Below are positions 15,115 to 37,057 of a stretch of DNA of 64,000 bases, in pieces. Position numbers and translations under genes: made by a program. A model generated the notes under the pieces. The model was not told the origin of the DNA. It searched no databases and was given only the letters and a program-made list of their open reading frames with translations. The DNA lies in sequence record LR745206.1; one strand, given 5' to 3'. Positions within the stretch are counted from its first letter, which is position 1. Every line of letters begins with the position of its first letter.

Positions 15115-17613
15115 TTATTTTAATACAGTAACATGACCATGATGTTTATGTTTCCTATCTGACATAGTTTCTTTGAACTCAATTTGCCATACATAGACAC
15201 CAGACTCAGTAGTTTTACTACCATACGTACCATCCCATGATTTAGAAGCATCATATGATTCGAAAACGATTTCACCCCATCTATTAAATATGGTCATATG
15301 AAAGTCATAAGGATCATATCCAGAATAGAATACTGGTTGAAAAACATCATTCAACTCATCACCATCTGGTGTAAATGAATTCGGTACATAGAAAGTGATA
15401 ACATCATTAACGATTATTAGTTTAGATGTTTCATCTTGACAACCCAAATCATTCTCAACAGTTAAGGTAACAATATAGTTTACATTAGGTACGTCAGGAA
15501 ATAGATGTGATGGGTCTTCAATATTTGATACCGGACTTCCATCGCCAAAATTCCAACTTGATGTTGTTGAATTAAATGAAGTATTGTCAAATAAAATCAT
15601 TGGATCATCAATAGTAGCGTTACCACTAAACCCAAAGGATGCAATAGGAGTGGATATAACTTCAATATAATCTGTGTATGTAACTGTTCCTTGACATCCA
15701 CCTGGTAGTGTGACAGTTAGTGTAACATCATATGTTCCTTCTTGGTTATAGGTATTGGTTACAACACCACAACCAGTTCCAGTATTTCCATTTCCAAAAT
15801 TCCAATCACAAGATGAACCAGGAAATGGTGTTGTTAAGTTTGTAAACTGAACCGTGAATGGATCACATCCAATAAGTGTATCTGCTAAAAATACAACTGA
15901 TGGATTTGTAATTACTTCAATATCCACCATATCAGTATTCTGACATCCATTAGCATCTGTACCTATTACTGTGTAAGTGGTTGTGACTCCAACGGGTGGT
16001 GTGAATGGATTACCATCAATAACTCCACCATCCCAAACGTAACTTGTACCACCAGAACCATTAAGAGTAGTAATAACTCCTTGACAAAGTGTTTGATCAG
16101 GTCCTGCCCCGATTACCGGAATTGGATTAACTGTTACATACATATTATCTGTTGAGATACATCCAAGTAAATCTGCGGTTACTGTATAAGTTGATGATGA
16201 TACCAAGAAAGGTGTTCCGTCAATAACTCCACCATCCCATGATATAACAGCACCATCTGGATTATTTGCTATTAGTGTGACCAAGTCACCATCACATATA
16301 GTTACATCAACACCAGCTCCAATTATTGGATAAGGATTTGATGTAACATCTACAACATCAGTTGAAATACACCCAAGTAAATCTGCTGTTACGGTATAGG
16401 TAGTAGTTGTTCCTGTTGGTGGAATAAATGATATTCCATCGGTAACTCCACCAGTCCAAACTAATGTAGCACCATCTGGATTAATAGCCGTTAATGTTAC
16501 GTTTGATCCATCACATACTGTTTGGTCAACTCCAGCATCTATTACTGGTATAGGATTTACAGTTATACAAATTGTATCTGAGTAAGCTATAGTTCCACAA
16601 CTACTAACTTCTGCTCTATAACAAACATCAGAACTTAGTGAACCAGTAGTCCAAGTATCTAATACTTCACCAACAACTGTTACAAAAGGTCCAGCTGATG
16701 TAGGTGCACTTTCCCATTGGATAGTTCCAAAATATCCTACTAGAGTAATATCAGTTGTTTCACCATCACATATTGTTGTTGGTATAGCACTTGCGATTCC
16801 TCCAATTGGAGCAGTAGGTGTATATGTTATTGAAGAATATCCATTTCCGGTATTAGCTCCTGGTGTACAAACACCACCTGGGTTTAGTGAAGAGCCTCCA
16901 CCTCCGCCACCGCCGCCATTAGCGCCTGTGCAACATCCATCATTACCTCCGCCTCCACCGCCGAAGTAACCACCTCCGCCTCCACCACCGGAAGCAGTTT
17001 GCCATTGTCCACCCATCCCACCTTGTCCAGATGTGCCGGGTTGTCCACCGGGTGGTGTCCCTGCCCAAGGTGCACCTCCAGCTCCACCAGCTACTTGTGT
17101 TCCTGGTCCACCTCCAGCACCATATGTACTAACACCAGCAGTTCCGATTAGACATCCACCATTTCCACCACCGTTAAAAACATCTGAACCTCCACCACAT
17201 CCTCCGCCACCAGATGCAACTGCGGTCAAAACACCATTAACAAGTATATTTGTTGAACCTCCTCCACCACATGACCCGTAGTTTGGATTTCCATCACTTG
17301 AATTAAACCCAGTTCCTCCACCGTTATATCCTGGTGTAGGACATCCACCTTGACCACCAACTATAATTTCAATTATATCTCCTGGGAGAACTGGAATAGT
17401 AGCAGTTATTATAGCACCGTCTCCACCATTAGATCCACCAACCCCACCGCCTTCGGCACCAGCAATAACTATATCAAGTGATGTAACACATGGTGGTACA
17501 ACCCAAATTGATGGAGCTCCTGTATATGAAAAATTCACAACTGTTTGTGAATATGGTATAAATGATAGGAAGGTTATAAATAGAAAGGATAATATTTTCT
17601 TTGATAGTTTCAT
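15115..17613 (-). CDS. Gly-rich/PKD protein with T9SS type B (gliding-motility-associated) C-terminal domain
   Basis: Signal peptide; GGxGG-rich domain; WNFGDG PKD motifs; YVPNSFTPDGDELND..IFNRWGE..GVYVW. Confidence 0.9.
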   Translation of the reverse strand: MKLSKKILSFLFITFLSFIPYSQTVVNFSYTGAPSIWVVPPCVTSLDIVIAGAEGGGVGGSNGGDGAIITATIPVLPGDIIEIIVGGQGGCPTPGYNGGGTGFNSSDGNPNYGSCGGGGSTNILVNGVLTAVASGGGGCGGGSDVFNGGGNGGCLIGTAGVSTYGAGGGPGTQVAGGAGGAPWAGTPPGGQPGTSGQGGMGGQWQTASGGGGGGGYFGGGGGGNDGCCTGANGGGGGGGGSSLNPGGVCTPGANTGNGYSSITYTPTAPIGGIASAIPTTICDGETTDITLVGYFGTIQWESAPTSAGPFVTVVGEVLDTWTTGSLSSDVCYRAEVSSCGTIAYSDTICITVNPIPVIDAGVDQTVCDGSNVTLTAINPDGATLVWTGGVTDGISFIPPTGTTTTYTVTADLLGCISTDVVDVTSNPYPIIGAGVDVTICDGDLVTLIANNPDGAVISWDGGVIDGTPFLVSSSTYTVTADLLGCISTDNMYVTVNPIPVIGAGPDQTLCQGVITTLNGSGGTSYVWDGGVIDGNPFTPPVGVTTTYTVIGTDANGCQNTDMVDIEVITNPSVVFLADTLIGCDPFTVQFTNLTTPFPGSSCDWNFGNGNTGTGCGVVTNTYNQEGTYDVTLTVTLPGGCQGTVTYTDYIEVISTPIASFGFSGNATIDDPMILFDNTSFNSTTSSWNFGDGSPVSNIEDPSHLFPDVPNVNYIVTLTVENDLGCQDETSKLIIVNDVITFYVPNSFTPDGDELNDVFQPVFYSGYDPYDFHMTIFNRWGEIVFESYDASKSWDGTYGSKTTESGVYVWQIEFKETMSDRKHKHHGHVTVLK

Positions 17614-17925
17614 TTTTTATTTTTTATTTGTTTTTGTTTACCTACTCTGTTAGGGATTTTCAGTTATCTCCCACTAAAATCTTTTTTATCCCCATAGAAA
17701 TATGGAGGTTAAGATTTAGTAAATTAAAAAAGGTGATATAAAATTATTTATTCATGCGTTGAATGATATATATATTACGATGGAAATATTTAAAAGGTAG
17801 CTTTTTTGACGAAAAATCAAAAAAAATTTTACCGTCTTCGACAGGTCTCAAAAAATTTTTAAACTCAGACATCAGAAATAATCACACAAATTAGAATACA
17901 AATAAATATAAATAATATATAGATA

Positions 17926-30016: not shown

Positions 30017-31972
30017 TTAAACTTTCTCGTAATGTGAGAAGACCATATTATAATCACCTCTACCAGAAGTTATTGTTCTTAGGTTAGTCATATAACCAAA
30101 CATCCTAGATATAGGAACGGTGCCGGTGATATATTTCAATTCACCCTTATTATCCATTTCGGATATAATACCTTTCCTCTTACTAAAATCACTAACAACT
30201 CCACCAACATAATCTTCTGGTGTTATGATATTAGTATTCATAATAGGCTCCAATAAACAAGGATCACATTTTTCCAAAGCTGATCTAAATGCTAACTGAG
30301 CTACCATTTCAAATGAGTAAGCATCAGAGTCAACATTATGATAACTACCATCAAGAAGTCTAACTTTAAGATTTTGAACAGGGTAACCAAAAGCACCATT
30401 ACTCAAACAATTCTTAAATCCTTTTTCAATAGCTGGTATATACTCTTTTGGAATATTACCACCAGTAACTTCATTGATGAATTGTAAACCTTCTACATCA
30501 TCATCAGCAGGTCCAATCTCAATAGAGATATCGGCAAATTTACCCTTACCACCAGTTTGTTTACTCAAAACCTCTTTGTGTAAAACAGTTTTCTGTAATC
30601 TTTCCTTATGAGCAACCTTAGGGACACCCTTAGTAACCTCAACACCAAAATCGGTTTGTAATCTACTTATAATAACATCAAGGTGTAACTCACCCATACC
30701 ACTAAGAATAGTCTGACCAGCTTCATTACTCTTAACTATAAGAGTTGGATCCTCTTCCGTTAGCTTAGATAAAGCAACTGATATCTTATCATAATCAACT
30801 TGAGTTTTTGGTTCGATAGCTATTGATATAACTGGGTCAGGAAAATTCATAGACATCAACTCCACAGGATTATCAACATCACAAATTGTTTGACCAGTGT
30901 TAGTATTTTTCAGACCAACAACCGTAACTATATCACCAGCTACCGCAACATCAACAGCTTTCTTATTTTGAGCATGCATCTGGAATATTCTAGATATTCT
31001 TTCATGTTCATTCGTATAAGGATTCAAAACAACATCACCTGGTTTTAATTGACCGGAGTATATTCTTATGAACGTAAGTTTTCCATGTTTATCAGTCATA
31101 ATCTTAAATACCAAAGCACTAAATGGATCCTCTACTCTATTACCTTTATCTTCTGGACTAGGTAATATATTAATAATAGTATCCAATAAAGTTTGAACTC
31201 CTTTGTTCTTAAAGGCAGAGCCACAAAGAACCGGGATAGCTAAGTTATTAAGGCAAATATCATGTAGAGCCTCATTAATACCATCAACAGTAACTTCATC
31301 ATTCAAATAAGACATCATAAACTTATCATTAAGATCAGATATCTGCTCCAACATAATACTTCTATATTCTTTAGAAATATCAATCATATGATCTGGTATA
31401 GTTTCGATGGAAACAACTTCACCCATCTCACCTGATTGTTTTATAGCAACCATATTTATTAGGTCAATAATACCTTCGAAGTCTGTCTCAGCACCAATTG
31501 GTAACTGTATAGCAATCGGATTAGCATTAAGTCTTTCTCTTATTTGTTTACACACCGATAAGAAGTCAGAACCAACTCTATCCATTTTATTAACAAACGC
31601 AACACGACTCACACCATACTCATTGGCTAATCTCCAATTCGTTTCTGATTGAGGTTCGACACCATCAACAGCAGAGAAAAGGAATACTAAACCATCAAGA
31701 ACTCTTAATGATCTATTTACCTCAACTGTAAAGTCAACGTGACCTGGGGTATCAATGATATTAATTTTATTATTGTTCCAATAGCAAGTTGTAGCAGCCG
31801 AAGTAATTGTTATACCACGGTCTCTTTCTTGAACCATATGGTCCATAGTTGTATTACCATCATGTACTTCACCAATTTTGTGATTTACACCTGTGTAATA
31901 AAGAATTCTTTCGGTTAGGGTTGTTTTACCTGAGTCGATGTGGGCGACGATGCCTATATTTCTTGTTTTCAT
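30017..31972 (-). CDS. fusA: elongation factor G
   Basis: [42 protein letters not shown]; ATG at 31972. Confidence 0.97.
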
Positions 31973-32059
31973 AATTTTCAAATTTTTATTTAAACCAACA
32001 TCTTCCGAAGCCTCTCTTATGAGAAGTTGTTAATTTTGTTAATAAAGTTTAGGGAATAA

Positions 32060-32094
32060 AAATTTAGTCAATCACCAAGGATTTGGGTGATTGA
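32060..32094 (-). terminator. terminator-like hairpin in the fusA leader
   Basis: TCAATCACC/GGTGATTGA stem 1 nt after the leader stop, followed by AAATTTTT. Confidence 0.6.
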
Positions 32095-32095
32095 A

Positions 32096-32131
32096 TTATA
32101 AAACAGCTCGTATGATAATTACGTTTTTCAT
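32096..32131 (-). CDS. putative fusA leader peptide MKNVIIIRAVL
   Basis: Hand-translated; between TATATTTG (32176-32183) and the hairpin. Confidence 0.65.
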   Translation of the reverse strand: MKNVIIIRAVL

Positions 32132-32194
32132 TATTCGTTATATATTACTTTCGTAAATAGTTTATTTTCCGATTACAAATATAAGAAAATAAAC

Positions 32195-33613
32195 TTAAAT
32201 CCTGTCAAATAAAATTTGTTTTTTACAACCTTCGATAACATTTAAAAATTCATTAGTCTTTTCAACGCCAAATAATGGTATGTATAATGTATTAACAACC
32301 AATAATAGTGAATATAAATTAGATAACTCAACTTCATAATTTTCGGAAGCCCAAGGTTTATTATCATTTATATATTTGTTTGCAAATTTAACCAATTCAT
32401 TAGTCTTACATAAAGCATCTTTAACTTTAAAGTTATCCCATAAATCTACAACAGAATCTTTATAACTATTTATTGTATCATTGAATGAATCTTCTGGTAA
32501 ACAATTTGGTCTGCGACCACATTTTATATCAATTAAATGTAATACTCTTGATACTAAATTTCCCCAATCATTTACAATTTCAGAATTCCATATTTGTTTA
32601 AGTTCATCATCATCCCAAGATGAATTAGCATAAGTATTTAATCTAAGAGCATAATACCTAACTGGGTATAATCCATACTTATCTAATTGATCAATTGGAT
32701 CTACAACATTACCAATTGATTTGGAAATCTTACGACCATCTTTATCGAGAATAGTACCATGAACTAGTAATTTATCGGTGTGTTTTATATTCTCAGCTTC
32801 TAGAAAGGATTGAAATATAACTCCCTGGAACCTTATATTATCTGGTCCACAGAGTTGTATAACTCTATTCCAGTTGAAATTATCTGTTAGATACCCAGCA
32901 GCGAAGATGTAATTGAGTAAAGCATCAAACCAGACATAAATAACTTGGTCTTCGTCATTTGGTACAGAAACACCCCAAGGGCAATTCTTTCTTACTCTAG
33001 ATATAGATATATCATCAGAATCTATAATTAGATTCCTTAATTCGTTTATTTTTGATATTGGTTCTAAGAACGTTGGATTATTTTCAATCCATTTTAGTAG
33101 TGAGTCTCTGTACTTAGATAATCTAAAGAAATAATTTTCCTCATCTACTATTTTTATTTCGGTTGTTGTATGATCTTGGCATTTACCATCCACCAATTCG
33201 GAATCTTTTTTAGCTGATTCACATCCAACACAATATTTACCCTTATATGAGCCTTTGTATATATCACCGTTGTTTAAGAATTTTGTCCAAATGGATTGCA
33301 CTTTCTCGTGGTGAGAGATGTCAGAGGTTTTATAAAAGGAATCATAGTCTATGTTAAATTTAACACAAAAGTCCTTCCAAGACGTTGTTAGGTTGTTTAT
33401 ATGTTGTTCTGGTGTTATACCAAGCTCTTGAGATTTCTCCCAGACTTTCAAACCATGTTCATCCAATCCAATGTTAAAATGAACATCATTTTTAATTTTA
33501 AACCATTTTGAAAGAGCATCTCCCAATATAAATTCGAAAGCGTGTCCAATATGTGGAACTGAGTTCACATATGGTAATGTTGTTGTTATAAATATATTTT
33601 CTGCGATTTCTAT
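32195..33613 (-). CDS. metG: methionyl-tRNA synthetase lacking the C-terminal OB domain; probable AUA start
   Basis: FITTTLPYVNSVPHIGH, YCVGCE Zn knuckle, YVWFDAL, KISKS; no in-frame ATG before the first motif. Confidence 0.9.
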   Translation of the reverse strand: MEIAENIFITTTLPYVNSVPHIGHAFEFILGDALSKWFKIKNDVHFNIGLDEHGLKVWEKSQELGITPEQHINNLTTSWKDFCVKFNIDYDSFYKTSDISHHEKVQSIWTKFLNNGDIYKGSYKGKYCVGCESAKKDSELVDGKCQDHTTTEIKIVDEENYFFRLSKYRDSLLKWIENNPTFLEPISKINELRNLIIDSDDISISRVRKNCPWGVSVPNDEDQVIYVWFDALLNYIFAAGYLTDNFNWNRVIQLCGPDNIRFQGVIFQSFLEAENIKHTDKLLVHGTILDKDGRKISKSIGNVVDPIDQLDKYGLYPVRYYALRLNTYANSSWDDDELKQIWNSEIVNDWGNLVSRVLHLIDIKCGRRPNCLPEDSFNDTINSYKDSVVDLWDNFKVKDALCKTNELVKFANKYINDNKPWASENYEVELSNLYSLLLVVNTLYIPLFGVEKTNEFLNVIEGCKKQILFDRI

Positions 33614-34342: not shown

Positions 34343-34377
34343 TTGTGTTTAATTTATACAAATATAAGGAAAATTAA

Positions 34378-35709
34378 TTATATTTCATAAATAATATTAA
34401 ATATTGGTTCCAAGTCCTCTATGATATACTTTAATGTAATTGATGTTGGTTTTGTTTTTGATGATTCTATCCACTCATCACAGAATAGATTCCAGAAAAA
34501 CTTATATAATAAATCATTAGCGATGCTAAGATCCATATTATCAAAAGCATTTAATATATCAGATTTATATTGTGACCAAATCTCTATTAATTTATCATCC
34601 TCTCCTATCCATTCGTTATCAATTTGTATTTGAATGAACTTCTTAGCGTTCTTAAACTTATTACTCATCTTCCAACCCATTCTCATCTTAGACTCATCTA
34701 TCTTAGTGTCCATACCCAATGTACCAGATGTTGACCAACTTCTTATACCATTAGCACCATATCTATCTATTAAAGGTTTTGGTGGTGTTGCATTACCACT
34801 CGACTTACTAAACTTATCACCGTTACCATCAAGTGTATGTCCTGTTATCATAATACTTTTCCAAGGTATTTGGTTATTTAAAAAGTAGGACATAGCTATT
34901 GTATAGAATGCCCAAGTTCTAATAATATCATGTGATTGAAATCTCATATCAAATATAGGACACTCTAAAGATGGTATTCCGGTGTGAGCTGACCAAGCTA
35001 ATTGTGGTGTTAGTGCTGATATAAACCAAGTATCGAACGTGGATGTTTCACCAGGAATCATAATTCCGAAATTTCTCTCTCTTGATATTGACCAGTCCCA
35101 TTTGATTTGTTCTAACCAATCATCTGCTCTTTTTTTGTGAGAGAAGGGTTTCCAATCTATCTTGTCTATCATTTCTTTTATTTTTGGTAAATGATCTTTT
35201 ATATTTATAAACCAGCCTTCACCAGTTTTTATTAAAGGAATCTCACCAGTTCTTTCGATTATCCCATCATCATTTAGTTCTGATTGTGATATAGATGTCT
35301 TTAATTTTTCTGACCATAAATATTCAGTTGTTGCTTTATAAGCAATTCCTCTTTCTTTTAATTTCTCAAATGCCATATAAGCAATATTAATTGATTGGTC
35401 ATCATAGGTATAATATCTTTGTTCACCAAAATTAATACCTGATAGATTAAATGTGTCATGATAATCTTTTGACTTGTTTATTGAGAAATCAATAATATTT
35501 TGTGTACCCTTTATTCCTTTGTTTGATGCAAGTTTACCAGTTGGTATTCCGTTGTTGTCAAAACAGAATGGATAAATTAAATTTTTACCAAGATATTTTT
35601 GATATCTAGCAATTATATCTCCTTGTGTATAAGAGAATATATGACCTATGTGTAGGTTACCACTTATTGTAGGTGGTGGTGTGTCGATTAAATAATTGTT
35701 TGTTTTCAT
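34378..35709 (-). CDS. valS: minimal valyl-tRNA synthetase (443 aa; CP1 editing region and C-terminal coil missing)
   Basis: DTPPPTISGNLHIGH, DWSISR, FDTWF, DIIRTW, KFSKS; Val-rich leader supports Val specificity. Confidence 0.9.
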   Translation of the reverse strand: MKTNNYLIDTPPPTISGNLHIGHIFSYTQGDIIARYQKYLGKNLIYPFCFDNNGIPTGKLASNKGIKGTQNIIDFSINKSKDYHDTFNLSGINFGEQRYYTYDDQSINIAYMAFEKLKERGIAYKATTEYLWSEKLKTSISQSELNDDGIIERTGEIPLIKTGEGWFINIKDHLPKIKEMIDKIDWKPFSHKKRADDWLEQIKWDWSISRERNFGIMIPGETSTFDTWFISALTPQLAWSAHTGIPSLECPIFDMRFQSHDIIRTWAFYTIAMSYFLNNQIPWKSIMITGHTLDGNGDKFSKSSGNATPPKPLIDRYGANGIRSWSTSGTLGMDTKIDESKMRMGWKMSNKFKNAKKFIQIQIDNEWIGEDDKLIEIWSQYKSDILNAFDNMDLSIANDLLYKFFWNLFCDEWIESSKTKPTSITLKYIIEDLEPIFNIIYEI

Positions 35710-35731
35710 GTTTATAATTTTATAATTTTTT

Positions 35732-35852
35732 AAAATAAAAAACCCGACATATCTTTTGATATGTCGGGTCGAGTGAGTTATATAATAGCTATTCCAACAT
35801 ATCAGACTGATACATTGACAACCACTAAGTTATTTAAATTTATTGTTTTCAT
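35732..35852 (-). promoter_or_regulatory. Val-sensing transcription attenuator of valS
   Basis: Leader ORF, alternative 1:2, 2:3 and 3:4 pairings; 12-bp terminator ACCCGACATATC/GATATGTCGGGT plus U-tract. Confidence 0.9.
35802..35852 (-). CDS. valS leader peptide MKTINLNNLVVVNVSV
   Basis: 5 Val in the last 7 codons (GTG GTT GTC GTA GTC); promoter TATATTTG at 35869-35876. Confidence 0.88.
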   Translation of the reverse strand: MKTINLNNLVVVNVSV

Positions 35853-35900
35853 ATTCTTTATATATCTACAAATATAATTAAAGTTTTTCACTTTTCAAAA

Positions 35901-36356
35901 TTATTTAGTGAATTCTATTTTGATGTGTTTGAATCCAGCATTTGATCCATCATAATTAAAATTTATATATCTATCTCTAAATATATCAAGAAACTCACCC
36001 AATCTTTTCTCACTAAGGTATTGGAACATTAAACAACCATTATTTAAATGATTATCATTATACAAAGTAGCGTCAACTCTCATTATCCACCTTCTATCTA
36101 TGACCATATAATAGTATAGTCTTTCAATAACATCAACAACTTCATCACCTCCAAATGTCTCTCTATCTTGATATACTCTATCTGGGAAAATATTAACATT
36201 TAGAAACGCTGTTCTTGAAGTCCAAGTTGAACTACCATATTCATGACACTCAGTTTTATACTTTAGATTACTATCCGAAAGTTCCATACAGATTTCATCA
36301 ACTATCTCTAATTCACCATCTTCTTTTTTCTCGTTATATGATTTTATATGTTTCAT
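35901..36356 (-). CDS. DIKDILLEL-family protein, N-tag
   Basis: MKHIKSYNE; IVDEICMELSD. Confidence 0.75.
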   Translation of the reverse strand: MKHIKSYNEKKEDGELEIVDEICMELSDSNLKYKTECHEYGSSTWTSRTAFLNVNIFPDRVYQDRETFGGDEVVDVIERLYYYMVIDRRWIMRVDATLYNDNHLNNGCLMFQYLSEKRLGEFLDIFRDRYINFNYDGSNAGFKHIKIEFTK

Positions 36357-37057
36357 TATTTCTTAAATGGTTGTAAATCTTTAAATATAGTATCTAATAA
36401 CATCTTCAATCCTTTCTTTGAGTTAACAATATAATTTATATACTCTCTAAGTATCTTTTCATTATTACATTGTAATTTCAATAAATATGACTCTCTACCA
36501 CCTAAACAAGATATAGGGTGTATTTCAAAATGTAAGTTATCTAAACTAGTGTATGATAAATTATTAATTGGACTAACCTCATCAATTGTATTATAAGGTG
36601 ATTTCAATTCTGGTTTATATTCATCATTTGTATATGTTATAAATTTATAATTACCAGCATCCTCTACTCCATAATTACTATCGGTGGTGAATTCAGAGTG
36701 CCAATCATCAATATAGTTTACAGCATCAAAACCAACATCAATAGAATTTGCGGTGGTTGACCAGTATGATTTTTGTAAACTCTTATCGTAAAATGATAAT
36801 TGTTCAAGAGCTTGTGAGAGTGTCTTGAATTGAAAATAGTTATATGCTATTGATCCTGGTTTATCCACTATATCCTTGTTTGGATCGTATTTAGCGATTA
36901 CCCATTCTTCATTATTTTTATAGAAGAAGAATCTTATACCATCATATGCAATTACATGAAATCTTATTATACCATTGTTAGCAATTGTATAATCCAAATC
37001 ATTATCGGTAATAAATTTTATTATTTTTTCTATATTTTCTTTATCCAGTTCTATCAT
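36356..37057 (-). CDS. hypothetical protein
   Basis: 233-aa ORF in coupled operon. Confidence 0.7.
   Translation of the reverse strand: MIELDKENIEKIIKFITDNDLDYTIANNGIIRFHVIAYDGIRFFFYKNNEEWVIAKYDPNKDIVDKPGSIAYNYFQFKTLSQALEQLSFYDKSLQKSYWSTTANSIDVGFDAVNYIDDWHSEFTTDSNYGVEDAGNYKFITYTNDEYKPELKSPYNTIDEVSPINNLSYTSLDNLHFEIHPISCLGGRESYLLKLQCNNEKILREYINYIVNSKKGLKMLLDTIFKDLQPFKK

Follow-up and report, generated by a model that had tools for sequence, protein, structure and literature searches.

Ribosome-mediated attenuation by a leader peptide is a known mechanism, and several described systems resemble the locus studied here. Among the closest is probably the pheM-pheST attenuator of E. coli, in which a short ORF rich in Phe codons is followed by an intrinsic terminator in front of the phenylalanyl-tRNA synthetase genes, and synthetase expression rises when the cognate charged tRNA is limiting. 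In the ilvGMEDA and ilvBN leaders of enterobacteria, runs of Val codons are used to sense Val-tRNAVal with the classical 1:2 / 2:3 / 3:4 pairing logic, but these leaders control biosynthetic operons and are multivalent (Ile/Leu/Val, or Leu/Val). In Firmicutes, valS can be controlled by a T-box riboswitch, which serves the same regulatory purpose (antitermination when tRNA-Val is uncharged), but binds the tRNA directly, is about 200 nt or longer and needs no translation. Outside Proteobacteria, His leader peptides have been predicted computationally upstream of hisS paralogues and hisZ in bacilli (Naville and Gautheret 2010, PMC2965389). Besides, Rfam contains the Bacteroidete tryptophan peptide leader RNA (RF01692) and the trpB motif (RF04312), which are leader ORF plus terminator units with Trp control codons.

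We analysed a stretch of 64,000 nucleotides (the window) which is the start of the 634,780-bp "uncultured phage" LR745206.1, a huge phage whose predicted host phylum is Bacteroidetes (PMC7162821). An earlier note, made from the sequence alone, had claimed a complete Val-sensing attenuator in front of a putative phage valS. It turned out that every element listed there is present on the minus strand (Table 1), except that the terminator has 13 bp by folding, where the note said 12. Compared with pheM-pheST, this unit senses Val rather than Phe, lies in a virus rather than on a bacterial chromosome and shows no sequence similarity, while compared with the ilv leaders it senses Val only and controls the synthetase. 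The His leader in bacilli is bacterial and a single case, whereas the phage uses the principle on at least seven different units, including tRNA genes.

Table 1. Coordinates of the valS attenuator and neighbouring features in the window
Feature	Coordinates	Strand	Sequence	Remarks
Whole unit	35876 to 35732	-		promoter-like box to U-tract
Promoter-like box (Bacteroidetes -7 type TAnnTTTG)	35869..35876	-	TATATTTG	within the longer motif TTATATTTGTA
Second conserved upstream motif (candidate phage promoter or initiation element)	35858..35865	-	ATATATAA	ends 5 nt before the leader ATG
Leader ORF	35802..35852	-	MKTINLNNLVVVNVSV, then stop	16 codons plus stop, ATG 35852 to TGA 35802
Control codons	35817..35825	-	GTG GTT GTC	Val-Val-Val
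Segment 1	35808..35817	-	CAATGTATCA	5' arm of the anti-antiterminator hairpin, starting at the last base of the Val run; 1:2 is 10 bp with two G-U pairs, loop GTC
Segment 2	35794..35804	-	TGATATGTTGG	first three bases are the leader stop codon TGA; pairs with either segment 1 or segment 3
Segment 3	35757..35767	-	CCGACATATCA	pairs with either segment 2 (antiterminator, 11 bp with one G-U pair) or segment 4
Intrinsic terminator hairpin (segments 3:4)	35741..35770	-	GACCCGACATATC-AAAA-GATATGTCGGGTT	13 bp, -20.5 kcal/mol
U-tract	35732..35742	-	TTTTTTATTTT	expected 3' end of the attenuated transcript; valS ATG (35709) follows 22 nt later
ValRS-like gene	34378..35709	-		443 aa, class Ia synthetase
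Genes of the upstream co-directional operon	37391 to 35901			stop of the upstream gene at 35901
Previous minus-strand terminator	37451-37425	-		

The five Val codons of the leader are GTG, GTT, GTC, GTA and GTC, so all four Val codons are used. To see whether the structure could arise by chance, we folded the 156-nt region and compared it with dinucleotide shuffles. The minimum free energy was -39.3 kcal/mol against -21.5 +/- 3.4 for the shuffles (z = -5.2, 0 of 200 shuffles as good), and the structure is hairpin 1:2 plus the terminator. The 2:3 duplex (-15.3 kcal/mol) beats 499 of 500 shuffles of the interval (p = 0.002). In a scan of the whole 635-kb genome with a direct stem finder, 219 short ORFs lie upstream of 259 terminator-like hairpins, and this is the only one with a Val run.

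The downstream gene is ValRS-like. It has a Pfam tRNA-synt_1 match at 1.8e-46, and its best NCBIfam hit is valS (NF009687) at 328 bits, against ileS at 156 and leuS at 92, while the best solved structure is ValRS 1GAX. The signature motifs LHIGH (residues 19-23) and KFSKS (residues 299-303) are invariant in five homologues. However, the valS score is below the equivalog cut-off of 738 bits, and the protein lacks the CP1 editing domain and the C-terminal part: in the alignment to 1GAX, query residues 148-183 (about 36 residues) stand where 1GAX residues 191-378 (about 190 residues, CP1) are, and nothing aligns beyond 1GAX residue 656. The enzyme is therefore called ValRS-like here, and its valine specificity is inferred from homology and from the leader.

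Homologous leaders of 14-20 codons were found in 17 related loci (numbered below with the prefix L). At the three positions of the run, 52 of 54 codons in the 18 loci are Val, while third positions and flanking residues vary; the run is degenerate in two loci, where L005 has V-I-V and L016 only V-V. GTC is 52% and GTG 25% of run codons (together 77%), against 4% and 9% (together 13%) of Val codons in the long ORFs of this phage, indicating a preference for rare codons. Segment 1 starts 0-3 nt from the last run codon in 17 of 18 loci, and in 14 loci the stop codon lies from 3 nt before to 11 nt after segment 2, and at least 20 nt before the terminator, which fits a ribosome footprint. The unit stays with valS rather than with the upstream gene, since upstream genes differ between loci and are divergent in L008, L009, L019 and L025, while in L003, L012 and L016 a homing-endonuclease-like ORF was inserted between the terminator and valS and the attenuator was kept. 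Nevertheless, one close relative (L014) and all relatives at or below 53% identity lack the unit. A scan of genome contigs gave a single hit, a 3.9-kb, 33% GC contig binned in a Dehalococcoidales MAG, which carries the same phage-type valS plus leader. It is most likely mis-binned phage DNA and is not evidence for a cellular origin.

Plain MAFFT alignments of the leaders misplaced a 2-nt indel and the spacer and were unusable for column-based pair counts, so we built a covariance model from seven well-aligned leaders and realigned 15 loci. L028, L016 and L008 scored below reverse-strand hits to the palindromic terminator, and were left out of this alignment and analysed alignment-free. Helix 1:2 is 88.5% paired with 7 of 10 pairs changing on both sides, and helix 3:4 is 98% paired with 8 of 10 pairs changing on both sides. 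Taken together, 93.4% of cells are paired and 15 of 20 pairs changed on both sides, with 0 of 500 shuffles as high and slid controls at 32-46%. For the antiterminator, which was not used to fit the alignment, 85.7% of cells pair and 6 of 8 pairs change on both sides, with 0 of 500 shuffles as high and slid controls at 33-52%. In the alignment-free tests, the shuffle p of the 2:3 duplex is 0.002-0.09 and 12 of 14 loci are at or below 0.05, while segments 2 and 3 match better within a locus than between loci (on average -11.2 against -8.65 kcal/mol, permutation p = 5e-5).

We also simulated ribosome positions in 14 loci. With the ribosome masking the RNA up to the third Val codon plus 13 nt, and segment 4 not yet made, helix 2:3 forms in every locus (-6.8 to -13.3 kcal/mol), and with the ribosome at the stop codon only the terminator forms. 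At equilibrium the terminator is more stable than the antiterminator (-15.3 kcal/mol as a duplex, -12.8 in context), so read-through must be kinetic, as in trp. In the window itself, with segment 4 absent and no ribosome, 2:3 plus a small hairpin (-15.9) is about as stable as the extended 1:2 helix (about -15.4), and basal read-through could be appreciable. What's more, the other two Val codons (GTA, GTC) lie in segment 1 and in the loop, and stalling there would mask segment 2 and favour termination. If TGA were read through, the leader would end at a TAA 24 nt later, still upstream of segment 3, and the model would survive; the standard code gives dense ORFs and no suppressor tRNA was found.

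The promoter boxes are consensus matches only and their function is inferred. The promoter-like box occurs 50 times within 60 nt upstream of ORF starts in this genome against about 6 expected. The longer motif, (C)TTATATTTGTA, recurs after the valS stop, before fusA and before gltX, and is also present before the leader in L001, L002, L005, L009, L015 and L025. The second motif, as ATATATA[AC], occurs 151 times within 60 nt upstream of ORF starts against about 11 expected, with a sharp peak 11-12 nt from motif start to ATG, and is present before most Val leaders and before the Ile, Leu, Phe and Asp leaders.

The same genome has leaders enriched in cognate codons before six other aaRS or tRNA units: IIII before ileS, LLL-P-L before a short leuS, QQ-I-QQQQ before three tRNA-Gln genes and glnS, F-N-FFF before a PheS-related ligase, N-DD before aspS and NN-R-N before asnS. 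Each has the same 1:2 / 2:3 / 3:4 layout. The Gln unit is conserved in at least 10 other huge-phage contigs. Single-protein scans of viral contigs for relatives of the IleRS and of the PheS-like ligase found nothing. Not every phage aaRS is attenuated, as gltX has only the promoter-like box and metS follows a small gene at 41 nt with no room for a leader.

No Rfam 15 family reaches threshold at the element. RF01692 and RF04312 align weakly over their full length to 35746-35872 and 35731-35816, with 29.0 and 29.6 bits against gathering scores of 49 and 59, so the element is not a member of either family. Only a tRNA and a DUF805b RNA reach threshold in the window, and only tRNAs in the sequences L099, L100 and L105. 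The guess in the earlier note that such control is not described for a viral aaRS agrees with these results and with our literature searches, which found no description in the open-access papers covered.

On this sequence evidence, the locus is most likely a valine-specific, ribosome-mediated transcription attenuator of trp/ilv type that gates the valS gene of the phage. Transcription would start just upstream of the leader, probably at one of the two boxes, and can also read in from the upstream operon. If Val-tRNAVal is plentiful, the ribosome translating the leader is inferred to run to the UGA stop and cover segment 2, so that segment 3 pairs with segment 4 and RNA polymerase stops at the U-tract. 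If Val-tRNAVal is scarce, the ribosome would stall on GUG-GUU-GUC, rare codons that together need both Val isoacceptor types, and its footprint would cover segment 1. Segment 2 is then free to pair with segment 3 as soon as it is made, the terminator cannot form, and valS is transcribed. With no translation at all, 1:2 and 3:4 both form and transcription terminates. The expected result is negative feedback, in which ValRS is made on demand when charging of tRNA-Val falls behind. The transcription start, coupling with the ribosome, the actual 3' end, the valine response and its biological trigger (starvation, phage demand or host defence) are inferred.

Other explanations were considered and appear unlikely. 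The hairpin could simply be the terminator of the upstream co-directional operon, with the short ORF and extra pairings as chance features of an AT-rich spacer. Indeed, there is no other terminator in the window between the stop of the upstream gene and the hairpin, so transcripts from upstream would end here. But such a role is compatible with the attenuator and does not replace it, and chance does not agree with the compensatory changes in all three pairings, the changing upstream genes, the retention next to inserted endonuclease ORFs and the cognate leaders at six other units. It is also improbable that the leader senses general translation capacity or ribosome availability, for example as a phage timer tied to host translation shut-off. 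Any leader-peptide attenuator terminates when its leader is not translated and thus also reports whether ribosomes load at all, as inferred here from the default 1:2 plus 3:4 fold. However, Val is the only conserved residue class in the peptide, it uses rare codons and sits exactly 5' of segment 1, and the run amino acid changes to Ile, Leu, Gln, Phe, Asp or Asn in step with the downstream synthetase, which is not expected for a general sensor.

Control by a protein or a tRNA is also improbable, although aaRS genes are often regulated in this way, as at the thrS operator in E. coli and by T-boxes in Firmicutes, and hairpin 1:2 is conserved and might be bound by ValRS as a tRNA mimic. No T-box hit was found at E <= 10 in 35000-36500, the leader RNA is only about 120 nt, and the RNA between the leader start and the terminator is only about 110 nt with no specifier-loop or T-box sequence. 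The loop of hairpin 1:2 is not conserved and does not carry a Val anticodon, while the period-3 conservation of GTN codons argues that the run is read as codons. The least likely reading is a functional hydrophobic micropeptide or cis-acting arrest peptide. The peptide is short and partly hydrophobic, and Asn at position -2 of the run is frequent (14 of 18 loci), but apart from the Val run and this Asn the sequence and length vary freely, the C-terminal part differs completely between loci, and the analogous leaders have runs of whichever amino acid the next synthetase uses.

In conclusion, the mechanism is known, and what appears new, judging from Rfam and the open-access papers covered, is its use on viral aaRS and tRNA genes. 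These units offer very compact (about 120 nt) amino-acid-specific sensors, presumably functional in Bacteroidetes, and the leader codons give an independent clue to the amino acid or tRNA handled by divergent or truncated enzymes, such as the editing-domain-less ValRS and the PheS-related "mystery ligase". Huge phages are known to carry up to 15 tRNA synthetases and dozens of tRNAs, but why they do so and when these genes are used is open (PMC7162821). Cognate attenuators indicate that these genes are not constitutive and that each is wired to the charging level of its own tRNA, which gives a directly testable answer: they act as on-demand back-up when host charging capacity falls behind, whether from phage demand, starvation or tRNA/aaRS-directed defence. 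It is fairly likely, though less certain than the Val unit itself, that the at least seven attenuators (Val, Ile, Leu, Gln, Phe, Asp and Asn), of which at least the Gln unit is shared by many related huge phages, form a virus-encoded regulon that senses charging one amino acid at a time and switches on each phage synthetase, and for Gln the phage's own tRNA genes, only when that aminoacyl-tRNA runs short. This would be the first description of ribosome-mediated attenuation of aaRS and tRNA genes in any virus, and would mean that huge phages hold their translation genes in reserve and deploy them on demand.

To check whether the attenuator exists as described, we read the region on the minus strand and listed its elements with their coordinates. 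It turned out that the description in the earlier note is right, except that the terminator stem, which the note gave as 12 bp, has 13 bp. [quoted passage not shown] As RNA, the region folds into hairpin 1:2 plus the terminator at -39.3 kcal/mol, while dinucleotide shuffles give -21.5 +/- 3.4 (z = -5.2, 0 of 200 as good).

Coordinates of the attenuator, its regulated gene and other features (L099, L100, L101 and L105 are further stretches of LR745206.1; L003, L007, L012 and L016 are related loci)
Feature	Sequence	Position	Strand	Letters or remark
Upstream box	window	35876-35869	-	TATATTTG
Second AT-rich box	window	35865-35858	-	ATATATAA
Leader ORF	window	ATG 35852 to TGA 35802	-	MKTINLNNLVVVNVSV, then stop; Val codons GTG GTT GTC, then GTA, then GTC
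Val codons of the run	window	35825-35817	-	GTG GTT GTC
Segment 1	window	35817-35808	-	CAATGTATCA
Segment 2	window	35804-35794	-	TGATATGTTGG
Segment 3	window	35767-35757	-	CCGACATATCA
Terminator hairpin	window	35770-35741	-	GACCCGACATATC-AAAA-GATATGTCGGGTT
U-tract	window	35742-35732	-	TTTTTTATTTT
ValRS-like ORF	window	35709-34378	-	443 codons; ATG 22 nt after the U-tract
Box right after the valS stop	window	34369-34351	-	CCTTATATTTGTA
Examples of the enriched upstream motifs	window	35858-35876, 34351-34369, 32169-32187	-	(C)TTATATTTGTA and ATATATA[AC]
MetRS-like gene	window	32195-33568	-	457 aa
Spacer before fusA (EF-G)	window	31960-32190	-	200 nt
Short ORF in the fusA spacer	window	32131-32096	-	MKNVIIIRAVL, then stop
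Hairpin in the fusA spacer	window	32092-32070	-
Terminator after EF-G	window	30012-29988	-
DUF805b RNA motif hit	window	17639-17673	-	just upstream of the 832-aa ORF 15115-17613
Unit before ileS	L100	19299-19414	+
Unit before the leuS-like gene	L100	41966-42064	+
LeuRS-like gene	L100	42231-43499		422 aa
Unit before the PheS-related ligase	L105	genome 614928-615030	-
PheS-related ligase	L105	2218-3297	-	359 aa
Unit before aspS	L099	23700-23840	+
Unit before asnS	L100	27775-27880	+
Gln leader, terminator, three tRNA-Gln(UUG) genes and glnS	L100	45038-47152	+
Odd tRNA-like genes in the phage tRNA arrays	L100; L101; L099	44764-44837; 7436-7523; 31231-31315
Homing-endonuclease-like ORFs	L003; L012; L016	2193-3005; 1558-1998; 1003-1998		exactly between the terminator and valS
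Short remnant of such an ORF	L007	between the terminator and valS

The window is identical to positions 1-64000 of LR745206.1, an unannotated 634,780-bp 'uncultured phage'. A 634-kb genome is one of the four largest complete genomes in Al-Shayeb et al. 2020, which places its largest genomes in the 'Mahaphage' clade and predicts Bacteroidetes hosts for them (PMC7162821). The regulated ORF is a class Ia synthetase (Pfam tRNA-synt_1, 1.8e-46) and is closest to ValRS, with 328 bits for NCBIfam valS, 156 for ileS and 92 for leuS, while the best solved structure is T. thermophilus ValRS 1GAX. The HIGH and KFSKS motifs are kept, but about 36 residues stand where the roughly 190-residue CP1 editing domain should be, and the protein ends at the equivalent of 1GAX residue 656. 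It therefore falls below the equivalog cut-offs, and we call it ValRS-like. Several class I synthetases of this phage are unusually short, as the LeuRS-like and MetRS-like proteins are also truncated relative to bacterial enzymes. Downstream of valS on the same strand lie three small ORFs, the short MetRS-like gene and EF-G, and the next strong terminator on this strand follows EF-G. A fresh box sits right after the valS stop, and the attenuator therefore primarily gates valS.

To figure out whether the unit is conserved, we scanned viral contigs, metagenome contigs and genome contigs for relatives of the protein, which gave 17 further loci with a leader (L001-L005, L007-L010, L012, L013, L015, L016, L019, L025, L028 and L106), plus the 5'-truncated L011. 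Their ValRS proteins are 66-81% identical to the query. One of them, L106 (CAYHBE010000203.1), is a 3.9-kb, 33% GC contig binned in a Dehalococcoidales MAG, which carries the phage-type valS (73% identity) with a Val leader (MLRIANILVVVNTDSVWC, then stop) and is probably phage DNA mis-binned into a bacterial MAG. Each locus has an ATG leader of 14-20 codons, a Val run, a hairpin that begins 0-3 nt after the run and an intrinsic terminator. The run is V-V-V in most loci, V-V-V-V in L008, L012 and L028, V-I-V in L005 and V-V in L016. At the three run positions, 52 of 54 codons are Val, while third positions use all four bases and neighbouring residues vary, which is the signature of selection on codon identity. 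One close relative (L014) and all relatives at or below 53% identity, however, lack the unit.

The helices differ between loci, and examples of segment 2 paired with segment 3 are GAUAUGUUGG:CCGACAUAUC, GAUGUUGG:CCAACAUC, GAUGUUAG:CUAACAUC, GGUGUCG:CGACAUC and UCUGGUGU:GCACCAGA. The three-way pairing potential is nevertheless kept. Per locus, the 2:3 duplex beats shuffles of the interval with p = 0.002-0.09, and 12 of 14 loci are at or below 0.05. Besides, segment 2 matches the segment 3 of its own locus better than that of other loci (-11.2 against -8.65 kcal/mol; permutation p = 5e-5). On a covariance-model alignment of 15 loci, helices 1:2 and 3:4 are 93.4% paired with both-sided changes in 15 of 20 pairs, which no shuffle of 500 reached, while slid controls gave 32-46%. 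The antiterminator, which was not part of the fitted structure, is 85.7% paired with both-sided changes in 6 of 8 pairs (0 of 500 shuffles; slid controls 33-52%). Most unpaired cells in this last count come from three rows (window, L001 and L007) where a 2-nt indel is misaligned, and when read directly, those three rows form a continuous 2:3 helix of 9-11 bp.

The unit belongs to valS rather than to its upstream neighbours, which differ from locus to locus. In L008, L009, L019 and L025 the nearest upstream gene is on the opposite strand, 37-169 nt away, so that the hairpin there cannot be the terminator of that gene, and a promoter must lie in the short spacer. In L003, L012 and L016 a homing-endonuclease-like ORF has been inserted between the terminator and valS, while the leader and terminator are retained upstream of it. 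A short remnant of such an ORF sits in L007, and the spacer seems to be a recurrent insertion site. Two motifs precede the leaders, namely (C)TTATATTTGTA, which appears to contain the Bacteroidetes -7 consensus TAnnTTTG, and ATATATA[AC]. Both are strongly enriched just 5' of ORF starts across the genome (50 against 6 expected and 151 against 11 expected), with a peak 11-12 nt from motif start to ATG. This suggests promoters that give very short or leaderless 5' UTRs, although promoter function is inferred only. The spacer before fusA also has the promoter-like boxes, together with a short ORF, a hairpin and a structured remainder (z = -3.3), but it has no canonical terminator, so it may be another regulatory leader.

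The control codons are mostly rare ones. In ORFs of 200 aa or more in the window, Val codons are GTT 59%, GTA 28%, GTG 9% and GTC 4%, while in the leader runs of the 18 loci they are GTC 52%, GTG 25%, GTA 13% and GTT 10%. The runs nearly always mix a GTY codon with a GTR codon, and the phage itself encodes tRNA-Val(GAC) and tRNA-Val(UAC). Rare, slowly read control codons are generally typical of classical attenuators, but a contribution of G+C to stem stability cannot be excluded.

For the rest of LR745206.1, we searched terminators preceded by short ORFs and found six more units, in which the leader codons correspond to the downstream synthetase.

Cognate leader units found elsewhere in LR745206.1 (each peptide is followed by a stop codon)
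Leader peptide	Control codons	Downstream genes	Evidence for gene identity
MNFNTIIIIRYSIPWSIPIG	IIII	ileS	TIGR00392, 674 bits
MINNNVNILLLPLT	LLL-P-L	small ORF, then a 422-aa leuS-like gene	leuS_bact best NCBIfam match, 390 bits, below its 548-bit cut-off
MTTTQQIQQQQINQTD	Gln-rich	three tRNA-Gln(UUG) genes, then glnS	TIGR00440, 661 bits
MNTNTTFNFFFSHKMV	F-N-FFF	PheS-related ligase	NF051887, 423 bits
MKNIRLNDDRFLLTNCKADW	N-DD	aspS	475 bits
MKTMTINNRNRLTDII	NN-R-N	asnS	414 bits

Each unit has a hairpin after the control codons, a 7-8-bp or longer 2:3 alternative (p = 0.008-0.084) and a strong terminator. Segment 2 overlaps or closely follows the leader stop in five of the six units, while in the Ile unit it lies about 15 nt upstream of the stop. 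The Asn and Leu cases are weaker on codons alone, because Asn is common in this AT-rich genome. In the Gln unit, a leader-peptide attenuator appears to gate tRNA genes, and the arrangement of Gln leader, terminator, tRNA-Gln array and glnS recurs in at least 10 other huge-phage contigs (among L107-L120), with GlnRS 58-79% identical and varied Gln-run leaders such as MTTTSQYQQQQQINRTD, MVNITINIQQQQQQQTLNKGSGIALS and MKNLTLQQQQQMIKLD, each followed by a stop. The protein downstream of the FFF leader matches NCBIfam 'PheS-related mystery ligase SrmL' (cut-off 300 bits) and, more weakly, mitochondrial-type monomeric PheRS. The Phe leader suggests that its activity is tied to Phe-tRNA, while no paper on SrmL was found. 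Not all synthetases are covered, since gltX and metS have no leader. What's more, the tRNA arrays of the phage contain odd tRNA-like genes: ARAGORN calls two tRNAs with irregular anticodon loops (one with a 4-nt 'gtag'), and Rfam gives a tRNA-Sec-like hit exactly at threshold (47.4 against 47).

Several other explanations were weighed against attenuation. A plain terminator accompanied by a chance ORF is excluded by the conservation, the covariation, the divergent upstream genes and the cognate pattern. A general translation sensor, a protein- or tRNA-binding switch and a functional micropeptide could each be proposed instead, but none of them explains why the run amino acid tracks the downstream synthetase, and no T-box is present.

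Among known systems, the pheM-pheST attenuator of E. coli is functionally the closest, the ilv leaders share the use of Val codons, and the T-box on Firmicute valS shares the purpose. His leaders before hisS paralogues in bacilli were predicted by Naville and Gautheret (PMC2965389). The element shows the sequence-level defining features of the leader-peptide attenuator class, while the physiological response that also defines it is beyond sequence analysis. It is not a member of any Rfam family, and the best scores are 29-30 bits for the Bacteroidetes trp leader and the trpB motif, against gathering scores of 49 and 59. Elsewhere in the window, a DUF805b RNA motif hit exceeds its threshold (38.2 bits; gathering score 35.6).

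The mechanism is a textbook one, but its setting appears undescribed, being a virus, a synthetase gene, and one of a set that also gates tRNA genes. The huge-phage paper (PMC7162821) and the first 200 of its 257 supplementary files mention terminator-like palindromes, but no attenuators or regulatory leader peptides. Full-text searches also found nothing, although most subscription journals were outside their reach and a prior description cannot be ruled out.

From these results and the classical model, the following mechanism is inferred. A ribosome that reaches the UGA stop covers segment 2, so 3:4 forms and transcription ends at the U-tract. A ribosome stalled with a Val codon of the run in its A site covers segment 1, so 2:3 forms first and RNA polymerase reads into valS, while with no ribosome 1:2 and 3:4 form. 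Constrained folding reproduces these three states in all 14 loci tested. At equilibrium the terminator is the more stable structure, so the switch has to be kinetic, as it is in trp. In this inferred mechanism, the outcome is feedback control of ValRS by the charging level of tRNA-Val.
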